From contig NIVC01002848.1 in the NCBI GenBank assembly GCA_002269645.1, positions 1 to 64,000 of the forward strand: a DNA stretch of 64,000 bases, read 5' to 3'. How positions within the stretch are numbered: position 1 is the first letter of the stretch; each line of letters opens with the position of its first letter. Of this stretch, positions 7,701-64,000 are shown piece by piece. The notes beneath the pieces were generated by a model. It made no database searches, was not told where the DNA came from, and worked only from the letters and a program-made list of their open reading frames with translations. The translations under genes and the position numbers were made by a program. Source of the DNA: Macrostomum lignano (Eukaryota).

Positions 7701-7788
7701 GTCATTTTTCATTAACCAAAGAGACCTCACTGCTCACGCAAAAGTCTTAAGATATTTTGTCAGTGGAATATTCACAATGCCGAATTGT

Positions 7789-8181
7789 TCAATGCATAGA
7801 ATTGCATCTGTGCCTGAGCTTCAAGTGCCAGCCGTCATCGACCACAACGGCAGCGGCAACTGCGACAGCCGCCGCCGAGCCCTGACGCTTGCGAGCAGTC
7901 AGCAGATCCCACTGATCGTGTCGGATATTTTTCAATCTTTGTTGAAACTCCTTTTCTAACGCTCGTTGAGTCTCTTTCAATCGGGCACGCTCAACAATGT
8001 TCATTGACTTGACTTGACGTCCGCGGTCGCGATCCTGAATGCAGGTCTCCCAGACCAGCTCCTCTCGTTTGTCATTCTTTCTCCGTTGTACAGCTTCGTA
8101 GTAGTCTTTAGCGCTCTGAGGCCTGTCATAGTTTGTAATTGTTGACTGAATGGGTTGCTGCTGAGTTAGAATGATGCTCAT
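7789..8181 (-). CDS. Intronless 130-aa protein of unknown function with a central charged coiled coil
   Basis: Non-repetitive ORF with AAAAGC-ATG context and a heptad-like segment ERARLKETQRALEKEFQQRLKNIRHDQWDLL. Its poly-Ala run is like those in the other genuine exons here, and a TATA box lies upstream. Confidence 0.65.
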   Translation of the reverse strand: MSIILTQQQPIQSTITNYDRPQSAKDYYEAVQRRKNDKREELVWETCIQDRDRGRQVKSMNIVERARLKETQRALEKEFQQRLKNIRHDQWDLLTARKRQGSAAAVAVAAAVVVDDGWHLKLRHRCNSMH

Positions 8182-10431: not shown

Positions 10432-10662
10432 ATGGGCTCCCTGTGCTGCTGTTTTGGCGGCGACTCTGACGAGCATCGGCATGTGAACCAGCCCAGCCCG
10501 GAGACTCGCCGGCGACAGTTGGCAGAAGCGGCCGAAAATCGTCTCTCGTCCAGAGGGCCAAGCGAAGAGGCGGCCAGAAGGCAGAAACGACAGGACGAAG
10601 CTGACAGGATCAATATGGAGAAGGGTCGGGATAACACCGGGCTCAGTTGGCGGGTGGACTGA
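10432..10662 (+). CDS. SVIP: Small VCP/p97-interacting protein, 76 aa, intronless
   Basis: N-terminal MGxxCCCF (myristoyl/palmitoyl type), VIM-like RRRQLAEAAENR, and C-terminal GLSWRVD matching the SVIP GLRWTVS pattern. Confidence 0.9.
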   Translation: MGSLCCCFGGDSDEHRHVNQPSPETRRRQLAEAAENRLSSRGPSEEAARRQKRQDEADRINMEKGRDNTGLSWRVD

Positions 10663-10759
10663 TTGAAAAGCGGATCGATTGATTATTTGTTTCATAGTTA
10701 TTATTCCTGTAATTTGCAAGAAAATTTATTTTTAAATGTTGTTTGAAGATATTGAAACC

Positions 10760-13785: not shown

Positions 13786-16700
13786 TTAACTGTCAGACTC
13801 GTCATCCAAACAGACGCCGCAGCCAAAGCATCCAGCCACATGTTGACTGACAAATTCAATGAGCACAGCTGGCAGTCTTCCAGCAGCAGTCAACTGCCAG
13901 GCTCTCTGACGGCCCAGCAACTCGGCTGCTAGGCATCGAAGACTGTCTCTGCAGCAGCTGCAAAATTTTTGTTTACAAGTTTGTTTTTTCTCGTTTTTTG
14001 AAACGGTAAGTTTGGTGAACCCCACTGTATCGTAGCTGATTACCCCCACTGTCTCACAGCTGATTACCCCACTGTTTCACAGCTGATTACCCCACTGTCT
14101 CACAGCTGATTACCCCACTGTTTCACAGCTGATTACCCCACTGTCTCACAGCTGATTACCCCACTGTCTCACAGCTGATTACCCCCACTGTCTCACAGCT
14201 GATTACCCCACTGTTTCACAGCTGATTACCCCACTGTCTCACAGCTGATTACCCCACTGTCTCACAGCTGATTACCCCACTGTCTCACAGCTGATTACCC
14301 CACTGTCTCACAGCTGATTACCCCACTGTCTCACAGCTGATTACCCCACTGTCTCACAGCTGATTACCCCACTGTCTCACAGCTGATTACCCCACTGTCT
14401 CACAGCTGATTACCCCACTGTCTCACAGCTGATTACCCCCACTGTCTCAAAGCTGATAACCCCCACTGTTTCACAGCTGATTACCCCACTGTCTCACAGC
14501 TGATTACCCCACTGTCTCACAGCTGATTACCCCACTGTCTCACAGCTGATTACCCCACTGTCTCACAGCTGATTACCCCACTGTCTCACAGCTGATTACC
14601 CCCACTGTCTCACAGCTGATTACCCCCACTGTCTCAAAGCTGATAACCCCCACTGTTTCACAGCTGATTACCCCACTGTCTCAGCTGATGACCCCACTGT
14701 CTTATAGCTGATGACCCCACTGTCTCAGCTGATGACCCCACTGTCTCAGCTGATGACCCCACTGTCTCAGCTGATTACCCCACTGTCTCAAAGCTGATTA
14801 CATCACTGTTTCACAGCTGATTACCCCCACTGTTTCACAGCTGATTACATCACTGTAAGAGTTACTCACTTCATTTTTAGCGACTCTTCAAAGAACTTTT
14901 TGTGCTGATATCTGAAAAAAACAAGCGATACTACATTATAAAGCCTTCTTATATTGCTAACAAAGAAGTAAGTTTGCTGTGTATTGCTAAATTTTAAGAA
15001 GCATCTTAGTATTAAAATAGGACTCTATAAAATTTCCTTGAAAATATTCTAATGATGTTTGATAACAGGATTGTTAGAATATATGCATATTCTTCTGACT
15101 GCGATTATAGGAATTAGAGGTTAATTCTGTAAATTTTCTGTAAATTCATATATTTTTGAAGCATCGATATAACCTTCTGCAACTTCTGCGGGTCTTTTAT
15201 TTGATTTTGAACTTTTTCACTATACAGGATGCCAGCTGCAGAATCCCGGTTTTCAACTTGGCATCCTGGATTCGGATCCATCATGATGTCAACCCCTCCC
15301 CCCCAGGCTCACGGCAGCAACAGAGCGACTAGCTCGTGATTTCTCGCTTCCACAGCCAGCCTCAACGGTGTCACTTGCGCCAGGCAAGAACTGCTGTTGT
15401 CCCAGTCGGCACCTCCGGACAGCAACGATCTAGCTGCCAACGTCGCTTCCGCCGTCGTCATGCCAGTCGTCGCGAGCAGCATCAACGGTGTTCGATTGTC
15501 CTCGTCTACAGCGTTGACTGGAGCTCCGAGATCCAGCAGGATAGCCAGGCTAGACGGCGGAGCCCCGGCGCTGGCGGCCCGATGCAGACAGCTGACGCCC
15601 CAGACGTTTGAACAGGACACGTCGGCGAGGTCGGCCAGGCGTTGCAGCACCGCCGTTGGACAGGCGGCCGACTTGAAGGCGCGCATCGCCGGTGTCCAGC
15701 CGTCGCGGTCGGGCAAGTCGCAGTTGACCCGATTGGCGTCTTCGAGGAGGCCGGACCAGTTTGAGGACTCAATTAGCTGCTCAAGATGGTCGCGCATGTC
15801 CATCTCCTGGAGCAGTTTGCAGGAGGTGGATTGATCATCTTGATGGTGGCGTCTAATACTCATTCTGATCTTGGCGCCTAACGTTCATCTTGATCTTGGC
15901 GCCTAATGTTCATCTTGATCTTGGCGTCTATGTTCATCTTGATCTTGGCGCTTAATGCTCATCCTGATCTTGGCGCTTAATGCTCATCTTGATCTTGGCG
16001 CTTAATGCTCATCCTGATCTTGGCGCTTAATGCTCATCCTGATCTTGGCGCTTAATGCTCATCTTGATCTTGGCGCCTAATGTTCATTCTGATCTTGGCG
16101 CTTAATGTTCATCTTGATCTTGGCGCCTATAATGCTCATCTTGATCTTGGCGCCTAATGTTCATCTTGATCTTGGCGCCTAATATGCTCATCTTGATCTT
16201 GGCGCCTAATGTTCATCTTGATCTTGGCGCCTAATATGCTCATCTTGATCTTGGCGCCTAATATGCTCATCTTGATCTTGGCGCCTAATATGCTCATCTG
16301 GATCTTGGCGCCTAATGTTCATCTGGATCTTGGCGCCTAATGTTCATCCTGATCTTGGCGCTTAATGCTCATCTTGATCTTGGCGCCTAATGCTCATCTT
16401 GATCTTGGCGCTTAATGCTCATCTTGATCTTGGCGCCTATAATGTTCATCTTGATCTTGGCGCCTATAATGTTCATCTTGATCTTGGCGCCTAATGTTCA
16501 TCCTGATCTTGGCGCCTAATGCTCATCTTGATCTTTGCGCCAAATGATAATCTTAGCATTTTGAGCATCTTCATTTGACTTTTTTCTTGTTCCTTAAAAT
16601 GATTAATTGAAGGGAATATAATTCGCAGACACACTACTTACAGTAGACGACAGGCCTTTGATAGAACCCGCGCCGTTGAATGAGACAACTAGACGACGCT

Positions 16701-17759
16701 CTCTGTAGATTTATCGAATTAAGTTTGTTTTTTCATTTGTTAAGGCTGTATCCTGTATTTTAAAGTAGCATCAGGGAAGGCCCTTCCACCCGACGACAAT
16801 GTACATTCTGATAAAAGCAGCCCCTCCAATCCGCTTGGCATGTGTACATTCAATCCCCACTTGACTGCTATATATACATGTGTATTTCTATCCCCTGAGG
16901 AGTAAAGTCTAACCCCAATGTACATCGAACTATTTCGCCATTAATACCTCACCCTTAGGTCTGTACATTCAGGCTTCAGCCTCAGCGGTAATTAAATTAA
17001 CTTTCTTCATGAAATGTTTTCAAAACATGTAAATGGAAAATTCCCTAAAATCTAATCTCTAATTGGTCTTGAAACTTTATTTCAAGATTATTCGTGCACA
17101 AGCCATAAATTAATGTGTCAGCGCACGGGATTGAGCCAACGGTCGTGGCGTGGCCCCTGACGAAACACCTTTATATAGATACTGCACCCTCACCTCTCAA
17201 TAATCCTAGCTAGTTCAAAGTGCCCAGAGTCAGTTGCCAAGTCCTGTGCAGTCCGACCCGATTCGTCCTGCATCTTCAGCAACTCGACACGACCTCTGCT
17301 GCCGTATCTGCCGCCTCCCCTGCCGCCTCTGCTGACCTGAACAAACTTGGCCTGTCTAAGCAGGTGCAACAGGTGCTTGGCACACCGCCAACAGCCAGAC
17401 TTAGCCGCCTCCATTAGCGGGGTCCGGCTGGACTCGTTCACCTGCCATTTGGCCCGGAACGGCAGCAGGGCCAACACTCGCAGGTGATCCCGTCGGGCTG
17501 CCATATGAGCCGCCGTGTCGCCTGACGACAATTCGACGGCTTGCGGTTCGGCGCCGAGGTTTAAAAAGTACTCGATGCACTTGCCAGTCTGAGGCGGAGT
17601 CCAGTCGGTATCGGCAGTCAGCATGATTATGGTGCGATTGAGCTCGTCTCGGGCTTTCACGAGACCTGAGGTTGCGAGACGGCGGACTTCATCAAAGTCA
17701 CCTCGTATGGCCACTTTGGCAAGCAGTTGCAGAGCCTGAAGTACAGGTTGGACAGGCAT
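13786..17759 (-). CDS. Ankyrin-repeat protein with a C-terminal BC-box/cullin-box-like tail; proposed exons 17759-17194, 16702-16642, 15806-15313, 13957-13786 (~430 aa; may instead be two genes)
   Basis: Ankyrin motifs GDTAAHMAA, RTPLMEAA, GRTAQDLA, GWTPAMRA, GVSCLHRAA, RTPLMLLA and VTPLRLAV. All junctions are GT-AG and phase-compatible (2, 0, 2). The last exon reads SLRCLAAELL...LPAVLIEFVSQH. Confidence 0.7.
14030..14855. repeat. Minisatellite, 23-bp unit CAGCTGATTACCCCACTGTCTCA, intronic
   Basis: Directly visible. Confidence 0.96.
15866..16540. repeat. Minisatellite, 25-bp unit GATCTTGGCGCCTAATGTTCATCTT, intronic
   Basis: Directly visible. The unit resembles the adjacent unique sequence 15835-15866. 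Confidence 0.96.
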
Positions 17760-19190: not shown

Positions 19191-25763
<6,573 letters not shown>

Positions 25764-29487: not shown

Positions 29488-32400
29488 TCATCGCTTGCGT
29501 TTCTTTAGGCTGAATTTGCTGAACAATCTGCTGCCGGGGCGCTCTTGCTGCGTCTGTTGCTGCTGTTGCTGCTTCTGCTGACTCTGACGGACCATCTGGC
29601 CGAAGACATCGTCATCTGGCACAGTCGGAGCAATGGGATTCGACGAGGCCGCTTGCGGCAACGCCGTTCGCTGCTCGTCCAGCCTGGTTGCCTGGCAACG
29701 CATCAGCATGTCGAAGAAGGCGTCGTCGGGCAGGACGTTTTCTTTGTCGGCGTTTCTACTAGAAGACGAAGCCGCGGCGGCTGCTGCGGCGGCTGCTGCT
29801 GCTGCGGCGGCGGCTGCCGCTGAAGTAACATCCGGTTGCGACGGGCGAAGCCCGGGAAATGTTGGCAGACTGGCGCGCTGGTCGTTCATGCGGGAGCCTT
29901 GAACTCCTGGCGATTGGTTAGGAGTTGGGGACGGGGTCAACTGAGGTCACGGTGAAGGGGGCCGATTATGCAGGTTGGGTATAGAGGCTTTAGAGGCGAA
30001 GCTTTATATCAGATCTAGAGGCTTTAGAGACGAAGCTCTATATCAGATCTAGAGTCTTTAGAGGCGAAGCTCTATATCAGATCTAGAGGCTTTAGAGACG
30101 AAGCTCTATATCAGATCTAGAGTCTTTAGAGGCGAAGCTCTATATCAGATCTAGAGGCTTTAGAGGCGAAGCTCTATATCAGATCTAGAGTCTTTAGAGG
30201 CGAAGCTCTATATCAGATCTAGAGGCTTTAGAGGCGAAGCTCTAGACCATATCTAGAGGCTTTAAATACGGTTTTATAGATCAGATCTAGAGGCTTTAAA
30301 TATAGTTTCCCAGATCAGATCTAGAGGCTTTAGATATAGTTTCCCAGATCAGATCTAGAGGCTTTAGATATAGTTTCCCAGATCAGATCTAGAGGCTTTA
30401 GATACGGTTTTCTAGACCAGATCCAGAGGCTTCAAAGCGATGATATCCTACAGCATATCTAGAGGCTTTTTTAAAGACTAATCCATAGCACTAATGAATC
30501 AAAAAGCCACCAAGCCACAATTAGTTACCCACCGGCCAGCATATCCAAAAAGGCTTCCTCCATCTGCTGCTGCTGCTGTTGCTGCTGTTGTTGGCGACGT
30601 TGAATCGCCGAAGCTGCGGCGGCGGCTGCCGCAGCGCGCGGAGCAGCGGCCAATACGGGAGCCGAGCACCGCTGTTCGTCCATACGCCGACCCTGACAGC
30701 GGGAGATCAGGTCCAGGAAAAGGTCCTGGTTGTCGTGCGCCGCCTCCCCGGCAGCACCGGCGCCGTCGTCCAAGCCGCTGTTGTCCGAGCCGACTCGCAT
30801 CAGCAGGCGTCGCCCATCGTCGTTGCTGTCGCCGTCTACGTCGCGCCGATCGAACATCAAACCGTCGTCATCATCGTCGTTTTTGCCGACAGGTCGGGCG
30901 ACGGCGGCGGCGGTTGTTGAGGAAGCTGCACTTCGAGCCGCCGCACTGTCGACTTCGTGGTCGTCAGGCGACAAGCCGAGCAGCTGTCGAAGGTCGGCGA
31001 GGTTGAGCCGGGCAGCCGAAGCTCCAATATCGTCGCCGAGCTGCTCAGACAGAGCCAGGTGCCGAGCCGCATAGTCTAGAGCTTTAGCATTTTCGCCTAC
31101 GGCGGCGTGTGCGTTGCCTAGCGACCAGCAGGCGCGAGCCTCGCCAACTCGATCACCCAGCTGTTCGGCTATGCGCATGTGTCTGGCGTGATAGTCTATG
31201 GCCTGGAGTGGTTGGTTGGTTGGTGGCACCAATTAGCGGGTTGGATCTATAGTCTATGGCCTAGAGTGGTTGGTTGGTGGCACCAATTGCAGGATGGATC
31301 TATAGTCTATGGCCCAGAGTGGTTGGTGGCACCAATTAGCGGGATGGATCTATAGTCTATGGCCTAGAGTGGTTGGTTGGTGGCACCAATTGCAGGATGG
31401 ATCTATAGTCTATGGCCCAGAGTGGTTGGTGGCACCAATTAGCGGGATGGATCTATAGTCTATGGCCTAGAGTGGTTGGTTGGTGGCACCAATTAGCTGG
31501 ATGATCTAGTCTATGGCCTGGAGTGGTTGGTAGCACCAATTAGCCGGATGGATCTATAGTCTATGGCCTTGAGTGGTTGCATTGGTGGCACCAATTAGCA
31601 GGATGGGTCTATAGTCTATGGCCTGGAGTGGTTGGTGGCACCAATTAGCGGGATGGATCTATAGTCTATGGCCTAGAGTGGTTGGTTGGTGGCACCAATT
31701 GCAGGATGGATCTATAGTCTATGGCCCAGAGTGGTTGGTGGCACCAATTAGCGGGATGGATCTATAGTCTATGGCCTAGAGTGGTTGGTTGGTGGCACCA
31801 ATTGCAGGATGGATCTATAGTCTATGGCCCAGAGTGGTTGGTGGCACCAATTAGCGGGATGGATCTATAGTCTATGGCCTAGAGTGGTTGGTTGGTGGCA
31901 CCAATTAGCTGGATGATCTAGTCTATGGCCTGGAGTGGTTGGTAGCACCAATTAGCCGGATGGATCTATAGTCTATGGCCTTGAGTGGTTGCATTGGTGG
32001 CACCAATTAGCAGGATGGGTCTATAGTCTATGGCCTGGAGTGGTTGGTGGCACCAATTAGCGGGATGGATCTATAGTCTATGGCCTAGAGTGGTTGGTTG
32101 GTGGCACCAATTAGCTGGATGATCTAGTCTATGGCCTAGAGTGGTTGGTGGCACCAATTAGCAGGATGGGTCTTATAGTCTATGGCCTTGAGTGGTTGCA
32201 TTGGTGGCACCAATTAGCAGGATGGGTCTTATAGTCTATGGCCTAGAATTTCAAAATATAGTACAATCTGTCGCTCACGCTCACCTGTCTATAGTCTCTC
32301 ATAAGAGTGCAAGTGTTGCCCAGAGAATAGCAAGCCTGAGCCTCCAAAGCCGGTTCGCCCAGCTGTTTAGCCAGAGCCAAGCAACGCCTATAGTGATCCG

Positions 32401-35400
32401 CAGCCGTGTCCAATTCGCCCAAGAGTATATGAGCATTGCCCAGATTGCTATGAGCCCGACGCTCAGCACCCCTGTCGCCGAATTCCTTAGCAATAGCCAG
32501 ACGCTCGGTGTGATAACGGATAGCCTCGTGAAAGTTGCCTAATAAGTAGTGCGTGTTGCCAAGATTGCCGCAGGCGCGACCAACGCCGGCTCGATCGCCT
32601 AGCTCGCGTACTATAGCCAAATTCTGTGCGTAGTAGTCGGCTGCCCGACGGAGGGCCTGTCGAACAGGACTGGCCAGAGAGGCGTCTCCGACGTCAGCAA
32701 CTGCCACGGCTGAGGCGCCAGCGGCGACGTCGTCGGCTGCTGATGCTGCTGCTTGATCGGCGGCGCTGGACGCCGACGATGACGACGATCGACCGGCGTG
32801 TTTGCCGTGCGCGTGGTGCACGTTGCCGAGATTGTAGAGGGCGCGCGCTTCGCCCATCTGAAGGAGAGAAGGTTTGAGCGGCGTTCGTTGCGGCGTGGGG
32901 CTGGTGGTTGAATGTACATCGAAGGCGGGAGGTAGGTGGCTAAATGTACATTGGGAGGGGGTTTGGTGGCTAAATTTACATTAAGAGCCGGTTTGGTGGC
33001 TGAACGTACATTGAGAGCAGGTTTGGTGGCTGAACGTACCGTACATTGAGTGCAGGGGGTTGGTGGCTAAATTTACATTGAAGGGGGAAGGGGGTTGGTG
33101 GCTAAATGTACATTGAGAGCAGGGGTTGGTAGCTGATTGTACATTGAGAAGGGTTTGTTGACTGAATGTACATTGAGAAGGGTTTGCTGACTAAATGTAC
33201 ATTGAGAGGGGGTTGGTGGCAGAATGTACATTGAGAGGGGGTTGGTGGCTGTTTGTACATTGAGAGGGGGTTGGTGGCTGAATGTACATTGAGAGGGGGT
33301 TGGTGGCTGATTGTACATTGAGGGGGAGGGGGTTGGTGACTAAATGTACATTAAGAGCGGGGGTTGGTGGCTGAATTTACATTGAGAGCGGGGGTTGGTG
33401 GCTGAATTTACATTGAGAGCGGTGGTTGGTGGCTGATTGTACATTGAGTGCAGGGGTTGGTGGATAATTTACATTGAGGGGGAGGGGGTTGGTGACTAAA
33501 TGTACATTAAGAGCGGGGGTTGGTGGCTGAATGTACATTGAGGGGGTTGGTGGCTGAATGTACATTGAAAGGGAGGGGGGTTGGTGGCTAAATGTACATT
33601 AAGAGCGGGGGTTGGTGGCTGAATGTACACTGATGGCGTGAGGTTGGTTACGACTGCAAATGAATACTTTGGCGCCAGAGCAAAATTAAATAAAAATACG
33701 GAGTTGATACTTGATAGAATGCACTAGCACTAATCAGTAGCAATATGAGTTATATACGATCAAAACATACATTATTTCAATTATTCCAACAAGTTATGGA
33801 AATATCATAGCTGTACGCTCGTACATATCGCTTTATTACGACTCGTAACGAGATGTATCGTTTCATTAGAACTACGAAGATTTCGAAAAAAAACGCCACA
33901 CCATAAAATCCCACTCACTCATTCGATTTTCAGTTTTTTATTCGAACAAAAGTCTCAACTAAAGTACTGCAGCACTAACAAAGTTTTATTGTGCGACATA
34001 ATCTGATTGTCCCAGAATCTGGTCCGTTGTGAAAATGCGCGATATGAATCTATTAACTAGGGCAAATTATTCCAGATTCTACCTACAATTCACCCCAGAT
34101 TCTACTTACCCTTCACCCCAGATTCTACCTACAATTCACCCCAGATTCTACTTACCCTTCACCCCAGATTCTACCTACAATTTACCACAGATTCTACCTA
34201 CAATTTACCCCAGATTCTACCTACAATTTACCTCGGATTCTACCAACCATTTACCCCAGACAGTTAGATAACGAAGTTTCTCACCCGGTCGCCCAGTTCT
34301 CTAGTCAGCTCCAGATGCCGCATGCAGCACATGGCCGCTTCCTCAAATTTGCCCAGCACTTTAAGCGTGTTGCCAAGGTTACCAGACGCTTTTGCTTCGC
34401 CGGCTTTGTCGTCCATTGTTCTGTATGTTGAGTTTGATGGAGATTGTCAGGTAGAGTTAGAGGGAGATTCTCAGGTAGAGTTAGAGGGAGATTCTCAGGT
34501 AGAGTTAAAGGGAGATTTTCAGGTAGAGTTTGAGGGAGATTCTCAGGTAGAGTTTGAGGGAGATTCTCAGGTAGAGTTTGAGGGAGATTCTCAGGTAGAG
34601 TTTGAGGGAGATTGTCAGGTAGAGTTTGAGGGAGATTGTCAGGTAGAGTTTGAGGGAGATTCTCAGGTAGAGTTAGAGGGAGATTCTCAGGTAGAGTTAA
34701 AGGGAGATTTTCAGGTAGAGTTTGAGGGAGATTCTCAGGTAGAGTTTGAGGGAGATTCTCAGGTAGAGTTTGAGGGAGATTCTCAGGTAGAGTTTGAGGG
34801 AGATTGTCAGGTAGAGTTTGAGGGAGATTGTCAGGTAGAGTTTGAGGGAGATTTTCAGGTAGAGTTTGAGGGAGATTCTCAGGTAGAGTTAGAGGGAGAT
34901 TCTCAGGTAGAGTTTGAGGGAGATCCTTGGGTAGAGTTTGGGGGAGAGTCTCAGGTAGAGTTGGAGGGAGATCATGGTAAAGGCTACTAAGACTCGGGTT
35001 TATCTAGTAACTGAGATCCGTACCTGGCCAGACTCAAATCCAGTGTATGATAATCCAAAGCCTTGGCATAATCCTGCAGGTAGAAATGTGCATTGCCCAG
35101 CTGGCTGTACACGGCCGATAAGATTTTCAAATCGTCCGTGCCAACTTGCACCGCGGCCTCGAGAAACTGCACCCCGAGGCGACATTCACCACCTTTGCAA
35201 AGGCGCTCGCCTTCCAGGGCCAGCTCCAGACAGGTGGACTCGTCACCGGGCGCTAAGCCGGAGTTATTAGCTGCGGTCGAGGCTGACGGAGCCAGGTAAT
35301 GATGCGATCGACCGCTAATTGGCATTGCTGTTTTCTCTGCTGCTGCTGCTTCTTGCTGTTGTCGCTGATTAAAAACAGCGTTTGCTGCTGCAAAACACAT

Positions 35401-36359
35401 TTTTACATACAATCATAAATTTTTTTAATTTTATTCAACTCGTGATGATTGTGAAAATATGAGTTCCCTTAAGTGACTGGGTGACTGTTTTCGCCTTTAC
35501 TGAAGGTCAAACCTGAAGGGTCACGAAGCCTTTACTGAAGGTCAAACCTGAGGGTCACGAAGCCTTTACTGAAGGTCAAACCTGAAGGGTCACGAAGCCT
35601 TTACTGAAGGTCAAACCTGAGGGTCACGTGGCCTTTAATGAAGGTCAAACCTGAAGGGTCACGGGGCCTTTAATGAAGGTCAAACCTGAAGGGCCACGGG
35701 CCTTTAATTAAGGTCAAACCTGAAGGGTAGTGGGGCCTTTACTGAAGGTCAAACCTGAAGGGTAGTGGTGCCTTTACTGAAGGTCAAACCTGAAGGGTAG
35801 CAGCGCCTTTACTGAAGGTCAAACCTGAAGGGTCACGGGCCTTTAATAAAGGTCAAACCTGAAGGGTAGTGGGGCCTTTACTGAAGGTCAAACCTGAAGG
35901 GTAGTGGTGCCTTTACTGAAGGTCAAACCTGAAGGGTAGCAGCGCCTTTACTGAAGGTCAAACCTGAAGGGTCACGAAGCCTTTACTGAAGGTCAAACCT
36001 GAAGGGTCACGAAGCCTTTACTGAAGGTCAAACCTGAAGGGTCACGAAGCCTTTACTGAAGGTCAAACCTGAAGGGTCACGAAGCCTTTACTCAAGGTCA
36101 AACCTGAAGGGTCACGAAGCCTTCACTGAAGGTCAAATCACGGGGCCTTTAATGAAGGTCAAACCTGAAGGGTAGTGGGGCCTTTACTGAAGGTCAAACC
36201 AAATATAATTAAGAGTGACATTTAAGAAAAAAATAATTTACCACCACGGGAGCGCGACGTTAGCGTCAAACTACCAGACGTGATTGTGGCGGAACTATTC
36301 GTAGCAGTAGTATTATTAGTATTAGTAGTAGTAGTTGAATCGTAGTAAAACTCCGGCAT
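29488..36359 (-). CDS. GPSM2: G-protein signaling modulator (LGN/AGS3/Pins): TPR array plus GoLoco motifs; exons 36359-36242, 35387-35024, 34420-34285, 32857-32285, 31202-30533, 29906-29488; ~759 aa
   Basis: CLELALEGERLCKGG, LSAVYSQLGNAHFYL, GEAKASGNLGNTLKVLG and GEARALYNLGNVHH are LGN/Pins TPR hallmarks. GoLoco motifs: DLFLDLISRCQGRRMDEQR, EAFLDMLAGVQGSRMNDQR, DAFFDMLMRCQATRLDEQR. All joins are in phase (1, 2, 0, 0, 1). GPSM1 versus GPSM2 cannot be resolved; this is probably the single invertebrate orthologue. Confidence 0.93.
29990..30470. repeat. Minisatellite, ~34-bp unit AGAGGCGAAGCTCTATATCAGATCTAGAGGCTTT, GPSM2 intron 5
   Basis: Directly visible. Confidence 0.93.
31203..32245. repeat. 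Minisatellite, ~48-58-bp unit containing the exon-5 acceptor and first exon bases, GPSM2 intron 4
   Basis: Minus-strand unit ...GCTAATTGGTGCCACCAACCAACCACTCYAG|GCCATAGACTA, about 20 copies. Confidence 0.95.
32920..33630. repeat. Minisatellite, ~30-bp unit GGGGGTTGGTGGCTGAATGTACATTGAGAG, GPSM2 intron 3
   Basis: Directly visible. Confidence 0.93.
34070..34260. repeat. Short ~23-bp tandem repeat CCCCAGATTCTACCTACAATTCA
   Basis: Directly visible. Confidence 0.85.
34435..34970. repeat. Minisatellite, 24-bp unit GGGAGATTCTCAGGTAGAGTTTGA, GPSM2 intron 2
   Basis: Directly visible. The EGDSQVEF ORF is its antisense translation. Confidence 0.95.
35495..36200. repeat. Minisatellite, ~35-bp unit GCCTTTACTGAAGGTCAAACCTGAAGGGTCACGAA, GPSM2 intron 1
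   Basis: Directly visible. Confidence 0.95.
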
Positions 36360-42222: not shown

Positions 42223-44997
42223 TGTTGTACTTTGAGGCAGCGTGGCCAATTGAATACGATGCGAGAAGCAATTGCAGGGTAGAAAAAGCTTGCTTTGAAA
42301 AAGATTTTCTCCTTATCTGTTGGCGGCTCCTTCCAGTTGGCTTGCAGCTTTGCGGCGACACTGCGAATGAGCGGATCGGCCTGCGAGTGCTTGTCCAGCA
42401 GCTCGGCCGATAGAATCCCGTCTAGCACCTGGTGGATGTCGGCCATCTCGTCGTCGTCGTCGCCGCTGTCTGTCGACTCAGATGGTCGCTCGAAACGGGA
42501 CAGGAAGTCTGGCACAATTTTGTCTTGACTCTTTTCCAGGCTTATACTCGACGTTGAAGTTGTACTGCAGGAGCCGGTCGTTCCATCGGTGGATGCGCAG
42601 CGGCTTGTGCCCGGTGCCTTGGGTACACAGCAGTGCCTTGAGAGCCGAATGGTCAGTGCGTAAAGTCAGCCGTCTGCCGTAGGTGTAGATGTGCCAGCGC
42701 TCGAGAGCCCAGATGCACGCCAGAGCCTCTTTCTCACGTTGGTGTCAGTGCTCGCGAGGCGTAGGCCACCAGCTTCTCTGACTCGCCTACGCGTTGAAGC
42801 AGCACCGCGCCAAGCGCGAAGTCAGACGCGTCGCACTCGACGATGGTGTCAGCGTTGCAGTCGAAGTGGCTTAGCACCGGCGGACTCGTCAGCTGTTGCT
42901 TGAGCTCGGCGAAAGCAGCGTTGCATTCGCTCGTCCAGTGGAAGACGGTGTCCTTCTTGAGCAGCTCTCGCAGTGGTCTCGCCGTCTTGGCGAAGTCGGG
43001 TATGAACTTGGCGAAGTAGTTGACGGTTGCCAGGAATGACGAGACGCCCCGCGCTGTCGTCGGTGCCGGGATGCGGAGCACATCTTTATGTTAGACTTGG
43101 ACGGTCGAACTCCATCGGCTGAGATCCTGCAGCCCAAGAACACGATCTCCGGGGACGCCGATCTGGCATTTCTCCTTGTTCAGCGTCAGCCCGGTTTCGC
43201 TGAGACGTTCGAGTACTGCCTGAAGCCGCTTGCCGTGCTCGTCAGAGTTGACGCCGAGAATGACGATGTCGTCCACTGAGTGCCGGACACCATTGATGTC
43301 GGCCAGAACGGTTGACAGGATTTTCTGGAAACAGGCACAAGAACTGGACATGCCAAACGGGACCCTCGTGAACTGGTAGAGCCCGCAGTGAGTGATGAAC
43401 GCGGTCAGCTGCCTACTGCCGGGGTGCAGTGGGATCTGCAGGTAGCTTTGCTTCAGGTCCAGCTTGCTGAAGATCTGCGCGCCTGCAAACTCTGCGGCCA
43501 GCTCCTCCTGGGTCGGCACGGGAAACTTATCCGGGTTGATCCCTTGGTTGCAGTTGCGCAGGTCAACGCACAGTCGCAGGTCGCCATTCTTCTTCTTGGA
43601 TACGACTAGATTGGACACCTAGGGAGAGGCATCAATCTTCTCGATGACACCTGCGGCCTCCATCTTACTTAGCTCGTCCTTCACGCGGTCCTGAAGTGCC
43701 AGCGGCACCCGGCGCAGCGGCTGAACTGTCGGTGTCGCATCTTGGCGCAGCTGTGGTCGATGGCAAAACTTCTTGGCCATACCGATGCCGTCGAAGATTC
43801 CCGGGAACTCTCCAGCGATTGATCGATGTTGTTGATTGCGTTGACTCGGATTGAGAATCCCAGCTTGTCCATGCCGTCCAGACCAAGGATGTTAGCACCT
43901 CGTCGTGCGATGAAGAAGCGGCAGATGGCGGACTTGCCGCAGTGCACAACGCACAGCTCTGCGGTCCCGAGCACGTCAATTGCAGAGCCTGTGTACGAGA
44001 ACAGCTGCTTCGGAGTCGGCGTGATGACCGGTTGCTTCGGCAGGCGTTTCACGGTCTTCTCGTTGATGATGTTGACTCTTGAGCCCGTGTCCAATAGGAG
44101 ACTGACGTCGATGTCAGCGATGCTGCACGTCGCGAAGTTAAGGAGCGACGCTTCATATTCTACCGCAGATACTACGAATGGCTCGTCGCCTTCGTCCTTT
44201 ACGGTGCGAACCTGGCGTCGCTGTCGGCAGCAAGCTTTGAAGTGTCCGACCTTGTGGCAGTGCAAGCAGGTCTCTCCATAAGCAGTCGCTCTCGAATGCG
44301 CGGCGAATGGGTCTTCTCGATGATCTGGTCCCGGATCATCTGATCACGGAGAGCCCCGTATTCGCAGTCTGCCGCGAGTTCTCGGAGGGCGTCGACGAAC
44401 TGGCTGACTGGCTCGCCTGGCATCTGGGCGCGCGACTTGAACTTTTAGCGGTTTCTGATTGTGCTGTGCGACTGACCGAAGATCGTTTTCAGTGCAGCCA
44501 CCAGCTTGTTAAACGTATCAACGCTCGTTGTTGGGCAGATTCCTCAGCGCGTAGACTCTCTGGCCTTCCTCGCCTATAGTAGATGAAGATGAACGAGAAT
44601 CGCCTTCTTGCGTGCATCCGATGCTTCATTTAGGTCCAAGGCCTCCAGATAAATCTTGAATCCTTCGATCCAAAGATTCCAAGGCGTGTGTGGCTGTCCT
44701 GGGTGGGCGAGAAACACGCGTGGCTCGGAAATGCTCAGACTCGTCGCCATGTTGTATTTTAAGAGGCAGCGTGGCCAAATGAATAAGATGCGAGAAGCGA
44801 TTGCAGGGTAGAAAAGTCACAAAGGCTTAAAAGGCCGGTGCGCACTTATATTATAGTTAAACTACTAACCAGCATGATTCAGCAGACATCAAACCCCCCA
44901 CCCGGCCTAGCTAGGCCGGTCTGGGCAGACAGACGAACCCTCTCCCCCCAATCAGAACGCAAGAGCCCTAACCGGTGTACAAGCCGCATACACAACA
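42223..44997 (-). mobile_element. Gypsy (Mag-like) LTR retrotransposon, frameshifted, with integrase deleted
   Basis: 5' LTR 44997-44750 (TGTTG...CAACA) and PBS-like TGGCGACGAG at 44749-44740. Gag PWNLWIEGFKIY, zinc knuckle CLHCHKVGHFKACC, protease LLDTGSRVNII, RT FSKLDLKQSYLQIPL and SVDD, RNase H CDASDFALGAVLLQ and TDHSAL. A 65-bp 3' LTR remnant lies at 42223-42287. Confidence 0.93.
44750..44997 (-). repeat. 5' LTR of the Gypsy element (~248 bp)
   Basis: Terminal inverted repeat TGTTGTGT/ATACAACA. Its last ~65 nt are repeated at 42223-42287 with roughly 10% divergence. Confidence 0.8.
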
Positions 44998-47911: not shown

Positions 47912-51388
<3,477 letters not shown>

Positions 51389-54217: not shown

Positions 54218-56501
54218 CTAGTCTTCGTCAGTAGACATCAGACTAGCGCCAGAATTATCCTCATCCTCGTCATTATTAATGTCGTCGGGCGACTCAGTTA
54301 AATGCAAAGGTCTCAGCTGTGTGCGCGGCGGCCCGTCGGCACCGCCGCCCGATGCTTTTCGTTTCCTGCCGCTGCCGCCGGTTAACCAGGAGCCGTCGCT
54401 GATACCGACTCTGGTTGGCGACATCTGGTATTGACATTAGTTTGGATGCATTGAAATTAGAATAAAAATTCAATCATTGTTACTCTCCGTATGGGATATA
54501 AATAGAGTGCAAATCTCAGATAATATTAGAAAGATTAATTTAAAGGAATTTTGAATTTAAACCGAGCCCTATCTTCATTGTGCAAAGAACACACAGACCT
54601 ACCTGTTCAAGCCTTTCAACATCGTTAAATCGCACAGCGGAGCCGCCACCAGCGGTGGGGGTGACGGAGCCCTTGTACACCTCAGTGCGCAGGCCGCCGC
54701 TGCCGTCGGCAGTCTGGTGCGTCAGCACATAGTCCGTGGCCTTGCGAATGTCCCGAACCTCCAGTTTGGTGACGGATTTCCGCTTGCCTGGCACCTTGGT
54801 GCACAACACAGTGCCGCTGGGTGTCTCGTGCTTGGCGTGGTGGTCCACCACCAGCTGCCCGGCGCTGCGGGACCTTCGGCGGTAGCGAGGATTCGACGGT
54901 GGCGGCGGCAGCTCTTGTGGCTGCGGCGGCGGTGCCTTCTGGCCGCTGGCGCCCGGGCTGAAGCGGCAGCGCAGGCGGCTGACGAGGCCTGGCGTTGGCG
55001 CGGCGGCTGCATCGGCGTTGAGCTGCTCCTGCGAGCGGCTGCGGCGGAGGCGCGGGCGGACCGCCGACTTCTGCACCGCGTCCTGCGGGGAGGGCGGGTG
55101 GAGCTTGAGATGCTGCATCACACATGCCTCATCTCTGCTGCCCCAGCATCCTCCATGCCTCATCTCTGCTGCCCCAGCATCTTCCAAGCATCATTTCTGC
55201 TGCCCCAGCATCTTCCATGCCTCATCTCTGTTGCCCCAGCATCTTCCATGCCTCATCTCTGCTGCCCCAGCATCCTCCGTACCTCATCTCTGCTGCCCCA
55301 GCATCTTCCATGCCTCATCTCTGCTGCCCCAGCATCTTCCATGCCTCATCTCTGCTGCCCAGCATCTTCCATGCCTCATCTCTGCTGCCCCAGCATCCTC
55401 CGTGCCTCATCTTTACTGCTCCAGCATCCCCAGCTTCATCAGTGCTCACCATGCGGTACTTGAACTGGTCTCGCAGCCTCTCCTTGTCAGCCCGCTCCTC
55501 CTTAGCTGGTTCTCCTGGCCCTCCAGTCTGCTCAGCAGTTCTTTCTTCCCCGTGTCCGCAGCTGCCCTGTCTTTGCACAGCCGCATCTCCGCGTTCCTCA
55601 GCCGCTTCTCCAGCCTCGCCTTCTCCGCCCGGTGCGCCGCCTGCAGCCGCTGCACCTCTTCGAGGAGGTCGCCGCTGCCGCTGCCGCCGTCCCAGACGGC
55701 GTCCAGCTCGGCCCTGAAGAGCCGCGCCCGCTGCTCCAGAGCTCCCACTGCGACTCCCGCAGCGAGCCGCCAGCTGCCGCGGTCGCCGAGTCCGGCGCTG
55801 ACGGAGACACCGGCAGGATGCTGTCGAACTGCCACATGCGGCCGCCGCTGCCGTCCTCCGCCGACTCCGACGACGATGGCGGCGCCGACGGCACCTGCGG
55901 CGCGCGGCGTTGCGGCCTGCCAGCGGGCGTCTGCGGCACCTTGGAGCGGACGACCTGCGGGGATTGCGGAAGATGGGCTTATGATGGGGATCAGCGATGA
56001 GGATCAGTGATGGGGATAAGTGTTGGGGATAAGTGAAGGGGATCAGTGATGAGGATCAGTAATGAGAACCAGAATAAACTTAGATGGAGATGACAGGTTA
56101 TTAATGGGAAAAACAAGACAGAAGCTGATCAGCACCCACCTGCACTTCGGAGGCCATCTCAGCGAACTTCAGGACGTTCGCCGTCTCCTCGACCTCCTCG
56201 GCGTTGCGGTTGACGCAGAGGACCATCTTGACGGAGCCGTCACCGTCAAAGAAGTTCTTGAACAGCTGCGTCATCTTGCTCTCCCGGTACGGGACAATCT
56301 TAGTGGCGGCGTTGGCGCCCCGGCGCTCACAGCTCGCTGGTTCTCCCTCAGAGCCTCGATGCACCGCTTCAGCACCAGCAGCGAGTTGTTGATGTTGGAC
56401 GCCTCCCGCAGGCGGCTGCCCGCGTTGCCCGTGCGGAGCGACCGCTCGGAGCCCGCGAGGTCCACCAGGCAGAGCTGGCTGACGTGGAGGAGGCTCTTGT
56501 C
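54218..56501 (-). CDS. KIF23: Kinesin-6 MKLP1/Pavarotti, 3' half; exons 56501-56140, 55954-55450, 55082-54603, 54424-54218; three apparent 1-nt deletions; 5' exons absent
   Basis: [26 protein letters not shown] and [29 protein letters not shown] are the kinesin-6 motor end. A coiled coil follows, then [37 protein letters not shown] (MKLP1 Arf6-binding tail) and GSGRKRKAS. Confidence 0.9.
55125..55440. repeat. Minisatellite, 31-bp unit CATGCCTCATCTCTGCTGCCCCAGCATCTTC, KIF23 intron
   Basis: Directly visible. Confidence 0.93.
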
Positions 56502-56514
56502 CTGCAGGACGGAG

Positions 56515-56770
56515 TGTACTTTTATAATCACCAATGGTTTCAGGGTGTACTTTTATAATCACCAATGGGTTCAGGGTGTACTTTTATAATCACGAATGGG
56601 TTCGGGTGTACTTTTATAATCACGAATGGGTTCAGGGTGTACTTTTATAATCACCAATGGGTTCAGGGTGTACTTTTATAATCACAATGGGTTCATGGTG
56701 TACTTTTATAATCACCAATGGGTTCGGGGTGTACTTTTATAATCACTGATGGGTTCAGGATGTACTTTTT
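56515..56770. repeat. Minisatellite, 31-bp unit GGGTGTACTTTTATAATCACCAATGGGTTCA running into the gap
   Basis: Directly visible. Confidence 0.93.
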
Positions 56771-57048
56771 NNNNNNNNNNNNNNNNNNNNNNNNNNNNNN
56801 NNNNNNNNNNNNNNNNNNNNNNNNNNNNNNNNNNNNNNNNNNNNNNNNNNNNNNNNNNNNNNNNNNNNNNNNNNNNNNNNNNNNNNNNNNNNNNNNNNNN
56901 NNNNNNNNNNNNNNNNNNNNNNNNNNNNNNNNNNNNNNNNNNNNNNNNNNNNNNNNNNNNNNNNNNNNNNNNNNNNNNNNNNNNNNNNNNNNNNNNNNNN
57001 NNNNNNNNNNNNNNNNNNNNNNNNNNNNNNNNNNNNNNNNNNNNNNNN
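56771..57048. other. Assembly gap (278 N)
   Basis: Run of N. Confidence 1.
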
Positions 57049-60300: not shown

Positions 60301-61017
60301 ATGATGTGAGAACACTGGCTAGCGTGGAGGCTGGGCCGGTGTGGGTAGCACTAAGGAGTAGGAGAAGTGCACCAATAAACGCACATATCTACTGCCATGC
60401 ACCATGCAGTGCACCATGCATGTACATGCAGGTATATGGCCATGTAGCAACTGCTGGTCTACCAGTTCATTGATAGAATTGTATGAGGCGACCAGCTTCA
60501 GGGCGCAATGTGCTGGCTGGCCTCCGTGTGGCCTGTAGGTTGAACCAGTTGAGCACGTACATACATGAAGCTGCCGCAGTATGATCACCCCATTTACTTT
60601 TTAGAGGATCTGATGACCAATTTTTTAACTGACACCCACCAGCCTTTCAGAATTAGTTTTTCCGATCGTAATCAGACAAAGAAAGCTGTACATTCTAAAT
60701 CAATTGCAATTATGGCTATATCTGTATAGCGTTACATGTACAGTAGTTGCGTGACAGCATGACCACGTTTACGAAATTTCACTGATGATTCGCCAACAAT
60801 TCACTGCAGCAAATAAAACGAATTATCATTCGTCATCCAGACACAGCGAGGCTGCAGCTTCTACATCCCGTGGCCAATGGTAGGTGCCGCATGGTCATCG
60901 TGCTTAGACTGTGAGATCCTACTTAAGGGACTGATCAATTACAGAAATGCTCAGCTGCAGAGTTTTCTAGCGGTCGGAAACACTATTCCGTTGATGAGAT
61001 TAACAAACAGGTTTCAG

Positions 61018-61943
61018 ATGTCAATCAGAGGTGCAGCCGGCCTTATTCTGGCGTTGGCTTGTCTCGGAATTGCTTCGTTCAATCCTGCCGCGGTCGATGC
61101 TCTCGAAGGTACACTGCGTAGCTCCCGATCGTAGTAGCTGCGTTAATATTTTTTTTCGGTAGAATTTCAGAAGCATGAGCATAATATTATATATTATAAT
61201 CCAAATTTTCAGATACGGAACCAAATGCGGCCATTCAAAGCTTGGATGGACTCCCATTGAACCAAGTGAAGATTCCTGAAAGCGGAAAGCTGTTTGATCC
61301 AGACGAGAAGTCTTCTCTTCAGTGGGCCAGTGACAGCAAGAGAGGCCAGATCAACAACAAGAACGTGTTCAGGTGGGGCAAGAGAGACCGGACCAACAAC
61401 AAGAACGTGTTCAGGTGGGGCAAGAGAGACCGGACCAACAACAAGAACGTGTTCAGGTGGGGCAAGAGAGGCCGGACCAACAACAAGAACGTGTTCAGAT
61501 GGGGCAAGAGAGGCCGGACCAACAACAAGAACGTGTTCAGATGGGGCAAGAGAGGCCGGACCAACAACAAGAACGTGTTCAGGTGGGGCAAGAGAGGCCG
61601 GACCAACAACAAGAACGTGTTCAGATGGGGCAAGAGAGGCCGGACCAACAACAAGAACGTGTTCAGGTGGGGCAAGAGAGGCCGGACCAACAACAAGAAC
61701 GTGTTCAGGTGGGGCAAGAGAGGCCGGACCAACAACAAGAACGTGTTCAGGTGGGGCAAGAGAGGCCGGACCAACAACAAGAACGTGTTCAGGTGGGGCA
61801 AGAGAGACCGGACCAACAACAAGAACGTGTTCAGGTGGGGCAAGCGAGACCGGACCAACAACAAGAACGTGTTCAGGTGGGGCAAGAGAGGTCGGACCAA
61901 CAACAAGAACGTGTTCAAATGGGGCAAGCGAGGATCTATTTAA
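61018..61943 (+). CDS. Neuropeptide precursor: signal peptide plus 14 tandem amidated peptides (G/D)RTNNKNVFRW-amide; exons 61018-61108 and 61213-61943; 273 aa
   Basis: Hydrophobic N-terminus MSIRGAAGLILALACLGIASFNPAAVDA. Phase-1 join G|gtacac...ttttcag|AT. Fourteen 14-aa units each end in G-KR (amidation Gly plus dibasic cleavage). AATAAA at ~61972. Confidence 0.93.
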
Positions 61944-63469
61944 ATCATAACTTCAGGTTAATATTTCGGTAAATAAATTCCAACGAACTATTGAGTAAAT
62001 CTAAAGAAGAAAAGCTCCCATGCAGGATTGATCAAGACGAGAGTAAATCTCGCGCAAAGAATGTACGCCTATGACTTTTCACATTTCATTTCACGCCTAA
62101 AAGGATGCTCCTTTAATCAGATGGCCGTGTAAATCGAGTCTTTAGGGTATATCTTCAAAATATGTTTGCATGTAGTTCAGTATAAGCTATAAAAAGTGAT
62201 TTCGAGGAAGGAATTAGAAACGAGTACACAGTAAACTAGCTATCCATCCATTAAATGCCATACACTGTCATATTTCGTCACAAAAACACTGCATAACAAT
62301 CGAGCATGATGCGATGGAATTTGATGAATTCCATATCGCTGAATGGCAATTAACTTCTCGCGTCGCTTTTGAACAGTCGGAAAAAACCCCAACTGTAACG
62401 ACAGATTTGCATAGAAATCGATATTTTACGATGGCAGTTTACATATTTATTGACACACGTGGAGTCTAAAATAGGACTATTTTACTGCTTACAGCCGTTC
62501 CTGGATCGTACCAGTTATAAATGAAAGAAAATATCCGTGATGCAACGCACTATATAGAAGCATCAAAGAAGCAAAATTCATAATTCATCTGGAGTCTTTT
62601 TTGTAAAACCTGATATTTGCAAACTATGCTACTATTATGAGAACCTATAGATATACATCTAGATGAAGACAGATATAATTTAAAGTTTAATCATCTGCAG
62701 AGGGCCTGAGCCTATCTACACATGCATGGTCAAAACTCGATTAGCTACGGTACGATACAGCGCCTTACCTCCATGGGTGCGCTCAGCTGGCGTACTAACC
62801 GCAGTGAAGTTAGTCTACATTTGAATTGTTTAGCTACTACACTAGCTACAATGCGGTATTTCGTGTTTAGTAGACAAAATGAAAATCAACTAGCTTATGG
62901 CTGCAATGCTATGACAACTGTAATTTCAGAATCAATCTTTTTTAATTAAAGAATCCTTGATGCTGTTAGCTCGTACAATTAGGCTATAGCTAAACCTCTC
63001 GTTTGTGGTCATAAAAACGTGCGTGAATTTACAATTACAGGACTTCTGTGTATTCAAGTTACACGAAGTTTCTGGCGCCTATAGCAATTTGATTGCCTAC
63101 AAACAAAAGCGAAAGGAAATTAAAATTGCCTACACTATCTATGAAGCTGTGGTTATGATTTTAAGTTTAAAGAGAGACTTTAAGAGAGAGAGAGAGAGAA
63201 ACAGCCTCAAATAATTGTATGCTCTGTGTGACCGATTAAAATGCGTACATTAAAACAGAAAACCAAGCATATTGGATGCACGTCGCATGTACGTCGTATA
63301 TACATGTAGTAAAAATCAATTGTGATGCAAGCACTAGACAGCAGGCGCCTACAATTCTCCCCAACCAGAGAGATCCCCAGGGGATAAAAAACAAGTTCAG
63401 TTACTCAGTTATCAGCTCAAATACCCCAGAGCAATCAAAATGGCCCGTCCGCGCACGAAACCCCTAGGA

Positions 63470-64000
63470 TCACAATTTGTAGCTGAGCACTCTGTTACTG
63501 GCAGCTCTTGGATGTTCTCGCGTGGCGATGCTACCGCTGGGTAGGCCGGCGGGCTCTCCGGCAGGTTGGCCAGCGGGCTCTCCGGCAGGTTGGCCAGCGG
63601 GCTCTCCGGCAGGTTGGCCAGCGGGCTCTCCGGCAGGTTGGCCAGCGGGCTCTCCGGCAGGTTGGCCAGCGGGCTCTCCGGCAGGTTGGCCAGCGGGCTT
63701 TCCGGCAGGGTCGCCGGCGGGCTCTCCGGCAGGTTGGCCAGCGGGCTTTCCGGCAGGGTCGCCGGCGGGCTCTCCGGCAGGTTGGCCGGTGGCTCTCCGG
63801 CAGGTTGGCCGGTGGCTCTCCGGCAGGTTGGCCGGTGGCTCTCCGGCAGGTTGGCCGGCCGGTGCAGCAGCAGCAGGTTCAACCAGGGGCCGCAGCTGTG
63901 AGAGGTGCCGCATGCAAGACTGTTCGCCACCACCTTCGTCACCTTCGCCACCACCACCGTTGTCGTTGACCACCTTCTTCTTCTTCTTCCATTCGGGCGC
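63470..64000 (-). CDS. Possible 3' end of a gene entering from beyond the window, with (PAGE/PAGQ)n repeat encoded by a 24-bp minisatellite
   Basis: Open frame from the window edge (APEWKKKKVVNDNGGGG...EPAAAAPAGQPAGEP...). GC-rich and poly-Ala like real exons here, but no recognisable domain. Confidence 0.4.
   Translation of the reverse strand, partial: APEWKKKKKVVNDNGGGGEGDEGGGEQSCMRHLSQLRPLVEPAAAAPAGQPAGEPPANLPESHRPTCRRATGQPAGEPAGDPAGKPAGQPAGEPAGDPAGKPAGQPAGEPAGQPAGEPAGQPAGEPAGQPAGEPAGQPAGEPAGQPAGEPAGLPSGSIATREHPRAASNRVLSYKL

Follow-up and report, generated by a model that had tools for sequence, protein, structure and literature searches.

Does an array of 42-bp repeats near the end of a repeat-rich stretch of the Macrostomum lignano genome encode a neuropeptide precursor, or does it resemble one by chance, and, if it is a gene, to which peptide family would its products belong? 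These questions are raised by positions 61018–61943 of the window analysed here, that is, the 64,000 nucleotides of contig NIVC01002848.1 (assembly GCA_002269645.1, forward strand), for which an earlier note had proposed a two-exon secreted precursor with a signal peptide, an acidic spacer and 14 peptides, each followed by Gly-Lys-Arg. Our analysis confirmed that the locus is a genuine gene of two exons, the product of which is the secreted precursor of an amidated, multi-copy neuropeptide. Very probably, it is a functional M. lignano gene with FRWamide-like products that corresponds to the published gene model Mlig032062.g1 or to a paralogue of it. Genuine though it is, the gene holds no novelty, since its peptide has been predicted and synthesised before.

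Gene structure and the tandem-repeat background

The proposed model, which lies entirely on the plus strand, has a spliced coding sequence of 822 nt and translates into 273 amino acids, in agreement with the precursor described earlier. Exon 1 (61018–61108, 91 nt) opens with the ATG at 61018, encodes the signal peptide (MSIRGAAGLILALACLGIA, followed by Ser) and the start of the propeptide, and ends on the first base of codon 31. The phase 1 intron (61109–61212, 104 nt; donor AAG/GTACAC, acceptor TTTTCAG/AT) has a GC content of 34 %, compared with 51–54 % for the coding sequence; GC content of the window is 46 %, in agreement with that of the M. lignano genome. Exon 2 (61213–61943) terminates in TAA and comprises an opening part (61213–61343) that encodes an acidic spacer (DTEPNAAIQSLDGLPLNQVKIPESGKLFDPDEKSSLQWASDS) and closes with the first Lys-Arg cleavage site, followed by 14 head-to-tail 42-bp units (61344–61931), each specifying an 11-residue peptide, a Gly as the amide donor and a Lys-Arg convertase site, and by a C-terminal Gly-Ser-Ile tail with the stop codon (61932–61943), such that the precursor ends in ...GKRGSI. 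A putative polyadenylation signal, AATAAA (61972–61977), starts 29 nt past the stop codon.

Unspliced read-through meets a stop at 61132–61134 and the exon 2 frame does not contain any ATG; therefore, a Met-initiated product needs the splice, which joins the signal peptide in frame with the repeat array. There are 37 GT..AG pairs that preserve the frame, and the 61109/61212 pair has the best signals among them. Several points nevertheless count against the model as drawn. Other frame-keeping pairs exist, such as 61117/61213, which would add three amino acids; the donor GTACAC deviates from the M. lignano consensus GT[G/A]AG (PMC8629364), and position 61109 is the proposed, not the proven, exact donor site; finally, both the splice and the processing of the precursor are steps that we infer from the sequence.

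The 5′ end of the coding sequence might be defined by trans-splicing. The acceptor motif for addition of the spliced leader (SL) in M. lignano is [T/C]TNCAG, and the SL sequence itself ends in ATG (PMC8629364). The TTTCAG that a motif scan located at 61012–61017, directly abutting the ATG at 61018, fits this motif and may be where the SL is added, in which case the ATG donated by the leader would be in frame (MMSIRG...). No M. lignano SL RNA gene was found in the 64-kb window. Two upstream in-frame ATGs, at 60994 and 60877, are separated from position 61018 by no stop codon.

The signal peptide and the acidic spacer that had been claimed for this locus were both recovered. By a heuristic check that combined hydropathy with the –3/–1 rule, a basic n-region (MSIR) precedes a 15-residue hydrophobic core (residues 5–19; Kyte-Doolittle 11-mer maximum of 2.88), and the –3/–1 rule is satisfied after A19, S20 and A28. 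The spacer, of approximately 50 residues between the signal peptide and the first copy, contains 10 acidic and 5 basic residues, and no Cys is present in the protein after residue 15, that is, none past the signal peptide. The processing and amidation signal is canonical throughout: all 14 units end in Gly-Lys-Arg and Lys-Arg also precedes the first unit.

Tandem Repeats Finder reported a single array at 61336–61933 with a period of 42, 14.2 copies, 97 % matches, no indels and a score of 1098. The in-register translation reproduces exactly the peptide counts given before, namely GQINNKNVFRW once, DRTNNKNVFRW four times, GRTNNKNVFRW eight times and GRTNNKNVFKW once, each followed by GKR and none with a Trp other than the final residue. 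Only 7 of the 42 nucleotide positions vary within the unit (sites 2, 3, 5, 8, 29, 30 and 40). The differences among units are either synonymous (AGG/AGA, AGA/CGA, GGC/GGT) or replacements confined to peptide residues 1–3, and the NNKNVFRWGKR amino acid core is invariant, with the sole exception of the R>K replacement in the last copy. Furthermore, the unit variants follow a block-wise order (D,D / AGA,AGA / ... / D,D). Together with the near-identity of the units, this order suggests that unequal exchange or conversion took place recently in a genome prone to minisatellite expansion, in line with the earlier suggestion of recent expansion or concerted evolution.

The same propensity for minisatellites makes it necessary to consider that there is no gene here at all and that a non-coding array yields a prohormone-like translation by chance. 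Tandem repeats account for approximately 33 % of the window (34 arrays, mostly with periods of 20–60 bp), and simple and tandem repeats have been reported to comprise 15 % of the M. lignano genome (PMC5730564). Across the array at 61344–61931, all three plus-strand frames and one minus-strand frame are open, so that an open frame on its own proves nothing. Moreover, a 22-bp minisatellite elsewhere in the window (48785–49401, minus strand) spells IFSGKR by chance, a further point that weighs against the gene. What sets the 42-bp array beyond chance is the combination of an in-frame signal peptide exon, a low-GC GT..AG intron, the downstream AATAAA, the homologous precursors found in annelids and a published peptide that derives from a transcript-based gene model; in addition, the unit variation is largely synonymous or located at the peptide N-terminus. 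With this evidence, a chance origin of the prohormone-like translation is very improbable.

The minus-strand open reading frame (ORF) at 61319–61927, which lacks both a start context and homologues, was rejected as a by-product of the stop-free repeat. Arrays elsewhere in the window likewise generate spurious long ORFs in several frames, for example at 7321–7959, 10643–11535, 21148–22386, 34322–34990 and 50585–51388. The translation of the 22-bp minisatellite (...RDRIFSGKRW..., with 5 + 5 Gly-Lys-Arg motifs in two stop-interrupted ORFs) is a prohormone look-alike and makes a useful negative control. The neuropeptide gene is followed, 1.6 kb downstream, by a 24-bp tandem repeat (63540–63856, 13.3 copies, 93 % matches) in which several frames of both strands stay open and for which no coding evidence was found.

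The published peptide and Mlig032062.g1

The earlier note did not recognise the peptide. It had been published in 2022: GRTNNKNVFRWamide was predicted from the M. lignano propeptide Mlig032062.g1, synthesised and assayed (Dandamudi, Hausen & Lynagh 2022, J Biol Chem, PMC9234716), in the only work that a full-text search for the peptide string retrieved. Three M. lignano DEG/ENaC channels, Mlig049925.g2, Mlig051885.g1 and Mlig041003.g1, did not respond to the peptide, in a study that used 100 µM in the initial peptide screens (PMC9234716). The peptide is identical over 11 residues to the commonest unit of the array (8 copies) and is likewise dibasic-flanked and Gly-amidated. Neither the architecture nor the copy number of the precursor is given in the text of that publication, nor does it contain an expression or family analysis for GRTNNKNVFRWa. 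With the 11-residue identity, M. lignano or a close relative of it would very probably be the source on sequence grounds, and the GC content, the heavy tandem-repeat load and the SL acceptor motif are consistent with this.

On this identity, the locus is probably Mlig032062.g1 or one of its paralogues. The point that speaks against a simple equation of the two is that Mlig032062.g1 is also credited with a second peptide, AYGSMPWa (PMC9234716), which none of the frames in the entire 64-kb window encodes; the chance IFSGKR minisatellite aside, no other Wamide or Gly-Lys-Arg peptides were detected elsewhere in the window. The mismatch may mean that the locus is a paralogue, that the published model reaches past the window, that it is an uncut transcriptional unit, or that the attribution is loose. 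Indeed, Mlig names cluster transcripts at 95 % identity, and some transcriptional units carry several proteins (PMC5730564).

The absence of AYGSMPWa also bears on whether the locus could be redundant: the duplicated DV1 genome may hold it as a paralogue or haplotype copy, perhaps with a mis-assembled number of units, or it may not be the copy that is expressed. The DV1 assembly contains 180–312 Mb of duplicated sequence (PMC5730564), perfect 42-bp repeats are difficult to assemble, and a gap of 278 N (56771–57048), flanked by a 31-bp minisatellite, lies 4 kb upstream of the gene. Against redundancy, the frame is intact over 822 nt, as are the splice, stop and poly(A) signals, and the block order of the unit variants is what would be expected of a real rather than a collapsed array. 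We consider a redundant copy of this kind quite unlikely.

Family affinities of the peptides

Relatives of the precursor were sought by a word-indexed search and by an exhaustive HMMER search, the results of which coincide if long low-complexity proteins are left out; the top HMMER matches, long Asn/Lys/Arg-rich proteins of low complexity, were discarded as composition artefacts. The best remaining matches are annelid FRWamide precursors, namely P0003 (Urechis unicinctus, GenBank MT162138), P0005 (Capitella teleta CAPTEDRAFT_185359) and four ENA/Logan proteins (P0001, P0002, P0004 and P0006), with E-values of 8e-16 to 3e-6 in the word-indexed search (6e-10 for Urechis FRWamide, 2e-6 for CAPTEDRAFT_185359 and down to 8e-16 for the ENA/Logan proteins) and 2.5e-16 to 1e-6 with HMMER. 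They are followed by annelid RYamide precursors of the short neuropeptide F (sNPF) type (P0159, P0179, P0199 and P0215, including Paralvinella palmiformis KAK2159535.1; 2e-11 to 3e-7 with HMMER), by the RYamide-like precursors P0007 and P0008 (5e-5 to 6e-5, word-indexed search only), and by the MIP-type precursor P0236 (1.6e-6, HMMER), below which FMRFamide-like precursors rank in the HMMER search.

The peptides themselves were scored by right-aligned BLOSUM62 comparison over the last 9–11 residues with peptides taken from the matches and the literature, a measure of resemblance, not of homology, which gave a best score of 34 and a median of 23–24 for the FRWamide type, 26 and 14 for the RYamide (sNPF) type and 20 and 9.5–11 for MIPs. 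The best RYamide score is that of a bare tetrapeptide, VFRW; the best among MIPs is that of Platynereis MIP1. By sequence, then, the annelid FRWamide precursors appear to be the closest relatives, above any other described family. Like the M. lignano precursor, they consist of a signal peptide followed by multiple copies of [VIL]FRW-Gly-Lys-Arg, with peptides of 4–19 residues, and a copy in P0002 (...APKNVFRWGKR) shares nine consecutive residues with the units of the array.

The Urechis FRWamide, a 202-aa precursor with seven FRWamide copies, was regarded as restricted to that genus, and its sites of expression are the apical organ and the ciliary bands of the larva (PMC7737342). Our searches show that it is not species-specific: relatives that combine a CxxxC...CxC motif with FRWGKR occur in Capitella teleta and in four ENA/Logan assemblies. 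A candidate FRWamide family would include, among annelids, Urechis, Capitella and at least four further taxa. In the portions of text that give the Schmidtea and Schistosoma prohormone lists (Collins 2010), there is no multi-copy FRW-GKR precursor. The loci of P0001 and P0002 are 3804–4475 of L001 and 10001–10765 of L002.

The assignment of the M. lignano precursor to the annelid family has several points against it. The E-values against P0001–P0006 are driven by the [VIL]FRWGKR motif, which is represented here by 13 VFRWGKR units and one VFKWGKR unit. In alignment A1, the invariant columns, the initiator Met aside, lie only in or beside the F-R-W-G-K-R units, and the alignment contains no homology to the annelid precursors outside the peptide motif, either in the spacer or in the N-terminal region. 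The annelid CxxxC...CxC motif, present in P0001, P0002, P0003, P0005 and P0006 and partially in P0004, is missing from the M. lignano protein, and no Pfam family was found for this precursor, nor for the Urechis FRWamide. The architectures also differ: the annelid precursors contain 5–8 divergent copies with acidic spacers between them, whereas here 14 near-identical copies abut, and the fetched loci of P0001 and P0002 are each one uninterrupted ORF, in contrast to the intron after the signal peptide of the M. lignano gene.

The FRW ending is shared with precursors of another type, and the earlier note had accordingly favoured an sNPF-type ligand, that is, a flatworm counterpart of the LFRFamide/RYamide-type peptides in which a Trp-amide replaces the Phe- or Tyr-amide and which would act on a receptor of the sNPF/PrRP type. 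The part of this proposal that holds is the C-terminus: lophotrochozoan sNPF-type precursors (mollusc LFRFamide, annelid RYamide/LFRYamide) are likewise multi-copy and encode peptides with an xFR[F/Y/W]-amide ending, and VFRW-, LFRW- or IFRW-GKR copies are present in the annelid RYamide precursors P0007, P0008, P0159, P0179, P0199 and P0215, some of which match the query at the HMMER E-values given above. Furthermore, reviews assign the LFRWamide gene of Capitella and the RYamide gene of Platynereis to the sNPF type (PMC6389622; PMC8557429), and receptors of the sNPF type are reported from a platyhelminth (PMC7314547). The rest of the comparison goes the other way. Lophotrochozoan sNPFs are 4–6 residues long (PMC8557429), compared with 11 here, or 9 if the peptides are trimmed after Arg2; they mostly end in Tyr or Phe rather than Trp; the PHVPFRFG tail that is conserved in the six annelid RYamide precursors is absent; FRW copies are a minority in those precursors; the common motif spans only 4–7 residues; and the annelid FRWamides score higher. 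Urechis possesses both an LFRYamide precursor and a separate FRWamide precursor, which indicates that these are distinct genes in annelids. Membership in the sNPF type thus seems unlikely, although the shared C-terminus keeps it among the candidates.

A Wamide affiliation was not among the readings offered in the earlier note, even though it is apparently the grouping adopted in the published work. The peptides tested there were drawn from RFamide, FVRIamide and Wamide (MIP) propeptides, with the Wamide (MIP) peptides coloured in Fig. S2, and GRTNNKNVFRWa is paired with AYGSMPWa of the same propeptide (PMC9234716). Under this grouping, the gene would be a Macrostomum member of the Wamide/MIP/allatostatin-B family whose peptides act on a MIP-type G-protein-coupled receptor. 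All 14 units of a multi-copy precursor end in Trp-amide, the MIP-type P0236 is among the HMMER matches, and Platynereis MIPs (AWNKNNIAWa, AWNKNSMRVWa) are likewise multi-copy Trp-amides of 9–11 residues with an Asn/Lys-rich N-K-N middle; the N-K-N-x3-W-amide spacing is common to TNNKNVFRWa and Platynereis MIP1, AWNKNNIAWa (PMC4307165), the pair that accounts for the score of 20. However, the defining N-terminal Trp of MIPs (W-X5-8-W-amide) is absent, position 2 being Arg or Asn; MIPs end in RVW, IAW or SAW, not in FRW, and the F-R that precedes the final Trp here is RFamide-like; the scores against MIPs have a low median; the window does not encode AYGSMPW; and Wamides have been reported to be absent from platyhelminths in transcriptome surveys (PMC7270403). 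A MIP assignment accordingly strikes us as improbable, to much the same degree as the sNPF one.

Two further families can be set aside more readily. Luqin precursors have just one peptide, adjacent to the signal peptide, and a pair of Cys residues in the C-terminal part. The M. lignano precursor instead has 14 copies that follow a spacer of approximately 50 residues, its propeptide is devoid of Cys, the C-terminal pair included, and no luqin-like precursor was among the word-indexed or HMMER matches. The sole point in favour of a luqin-type (RWamide/RFamide) precursor, which had been put forward as the alternative to sNPF, is the Arg-Trp-amide ending found in some luqin-type peptides (PMC7270403), and this origin is hardly credible. 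Peptides of the NPF/NPY type comprise 36–40 residues that end in RPRF/Y-amide and are encoded by genes in which an intron interrupts the codon for the Arg of the C-terminal RF/RY (PMC7314547); they are ruled out by the 11-residue length of the peptides and by the position of the only intron, after the signal peptide.

Orthology with the FRWamide, sNPF or MIP/Wamide families is a candidate in each case, and the sequence by itself does not decide between them. Tentatively, and with less than even confidence, we suggest that the FRWamides might constitute a previously unrecognised spiralian family of annelids and macrostomid flatworms, distinct from both sNPF and MIP and with a receptor of its own, or else that the M. 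lignano gene might be the 'missing' flatworm Wamide, without the N-terminal Trp.

Neighbouring genes, predicted processing and significance

Several unrelated genes and gene fragments were identified in the window. A GPSM/LGN/Pins-type gene on the minus strand (29488–35412) has TPR exons at 34987–35412, 32243–32857 and 30525–31232 and a GoLoco-like exon at 29488–29940, with Ala/Ser/Gln-rich low-complexity inserts in the exons and introns filled with minisatellites; the best database identities are 50–75 %, and an exon of this gene had no close relative in a collection of 5.8 billion proteins (best partial identity, 75 %). An RCC1-repeat gene on the plus strand (19488–22386; Pfam RCC1 and RCC1_2) contains a 615-bp (GTCT)n microsatellite (21154–21768) between RCC1-like exons. 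Two ankyrin-repeat ORFs within 15309–17759 on the minus strand (Pfam Ank_2, E = 1e-12 each) are probably exons of one gene, and a TPR-repeat ORF at 3826–4404 on the plus strand (Pfam TPR_2, E = 1.5e-8) is probably an exon of an unrelated gene. The assembly gap is adjoined by a minus-strand segment (56101–56565) that encodes the C-terminus of a motor domain of the kinesin type (Pfam Kinesin, E = 2.5e-13). In addition, a decayed pol gene resembling those of long terminal repeat retrotransposons (42734–44265, minus strand) is split over three ORFs that correspond to a zinc knuckle and a DTG protease-like domain (43681–44265), a reverse transcriptase (43091–43618; RVT_1, E = 2e-25) and an RT-connection/RNase H-like region (42734–43081); their nearest proteins show 45–60 % identity, and a reverse transcriptase ORF had no close relative in the same protein collection (best identity, 60 %). 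The 233-aa ORF of the 42-bp array is not on record there either, which indicates that the collection does not cover the proteins of the source organism.

The coding architecture of the neuropeptide precursor comes from the sequence; its likely fate can be projected from the established regulated secretory pathway. A signal peptidase would cut off approximately 19–20 residues, PC2-type prohormone convertases would cleave after every Lys-Arg, an enzyme of the carboxypeptidase E type would remove the basic pair, and peptidylglycine alpha-amidating monooxygenase would turn the exposed Gly into a C-terminal amide. Each precursor would thus yield 14 amidated peptides, 13 xxxNNKNVFRW-amides and one ...FKW-amide, with predicted [M+H]+ values of 1390.745 for GRTNNKNVFRW-NH2, 1448.751 for DRTNNKNVFRW-NH2, 1374.739 for GQINNKNVFRW-NH2 and 1362.739 for GRTNNKNVFKW-NH2. 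An extra monobasic cut after Arg2, at the K-R-G/D-R-T junction, could trim most copies to TNNKNVFRW-NH2 (1177.623). The high copy number would be expected to raise the peptide output per transcript, and the receptor is most likely a rhodopsin-type G-protein-coupled receptor of the group activated by RFamides and Wamides.

Amidated precursors that contain many copies and whose units evolve in concert are commonplace and would not surprise a specialist. The immediate value of the locus lies in annotation: it provides a complete neuropeptide gene of a transgenic flatworm model, with coordinates, copy number and predicted masses. The residual interest stems from the functionally orphan status of GRTNNKNVFRWamide, for which the only experiment on record, with the three DEG/ENaC channels, was negative, and from the possible link between the annelid FRWamide genes and a flatworm gene, against the background of the unsettled status that ligands of the Wamide and sNPF types have in flatworms. 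If true, the assignment to an FRWamide family or, alternatively, the identification of the missing Wamide would revise our view of which ancient peptide systems flatworms kept.

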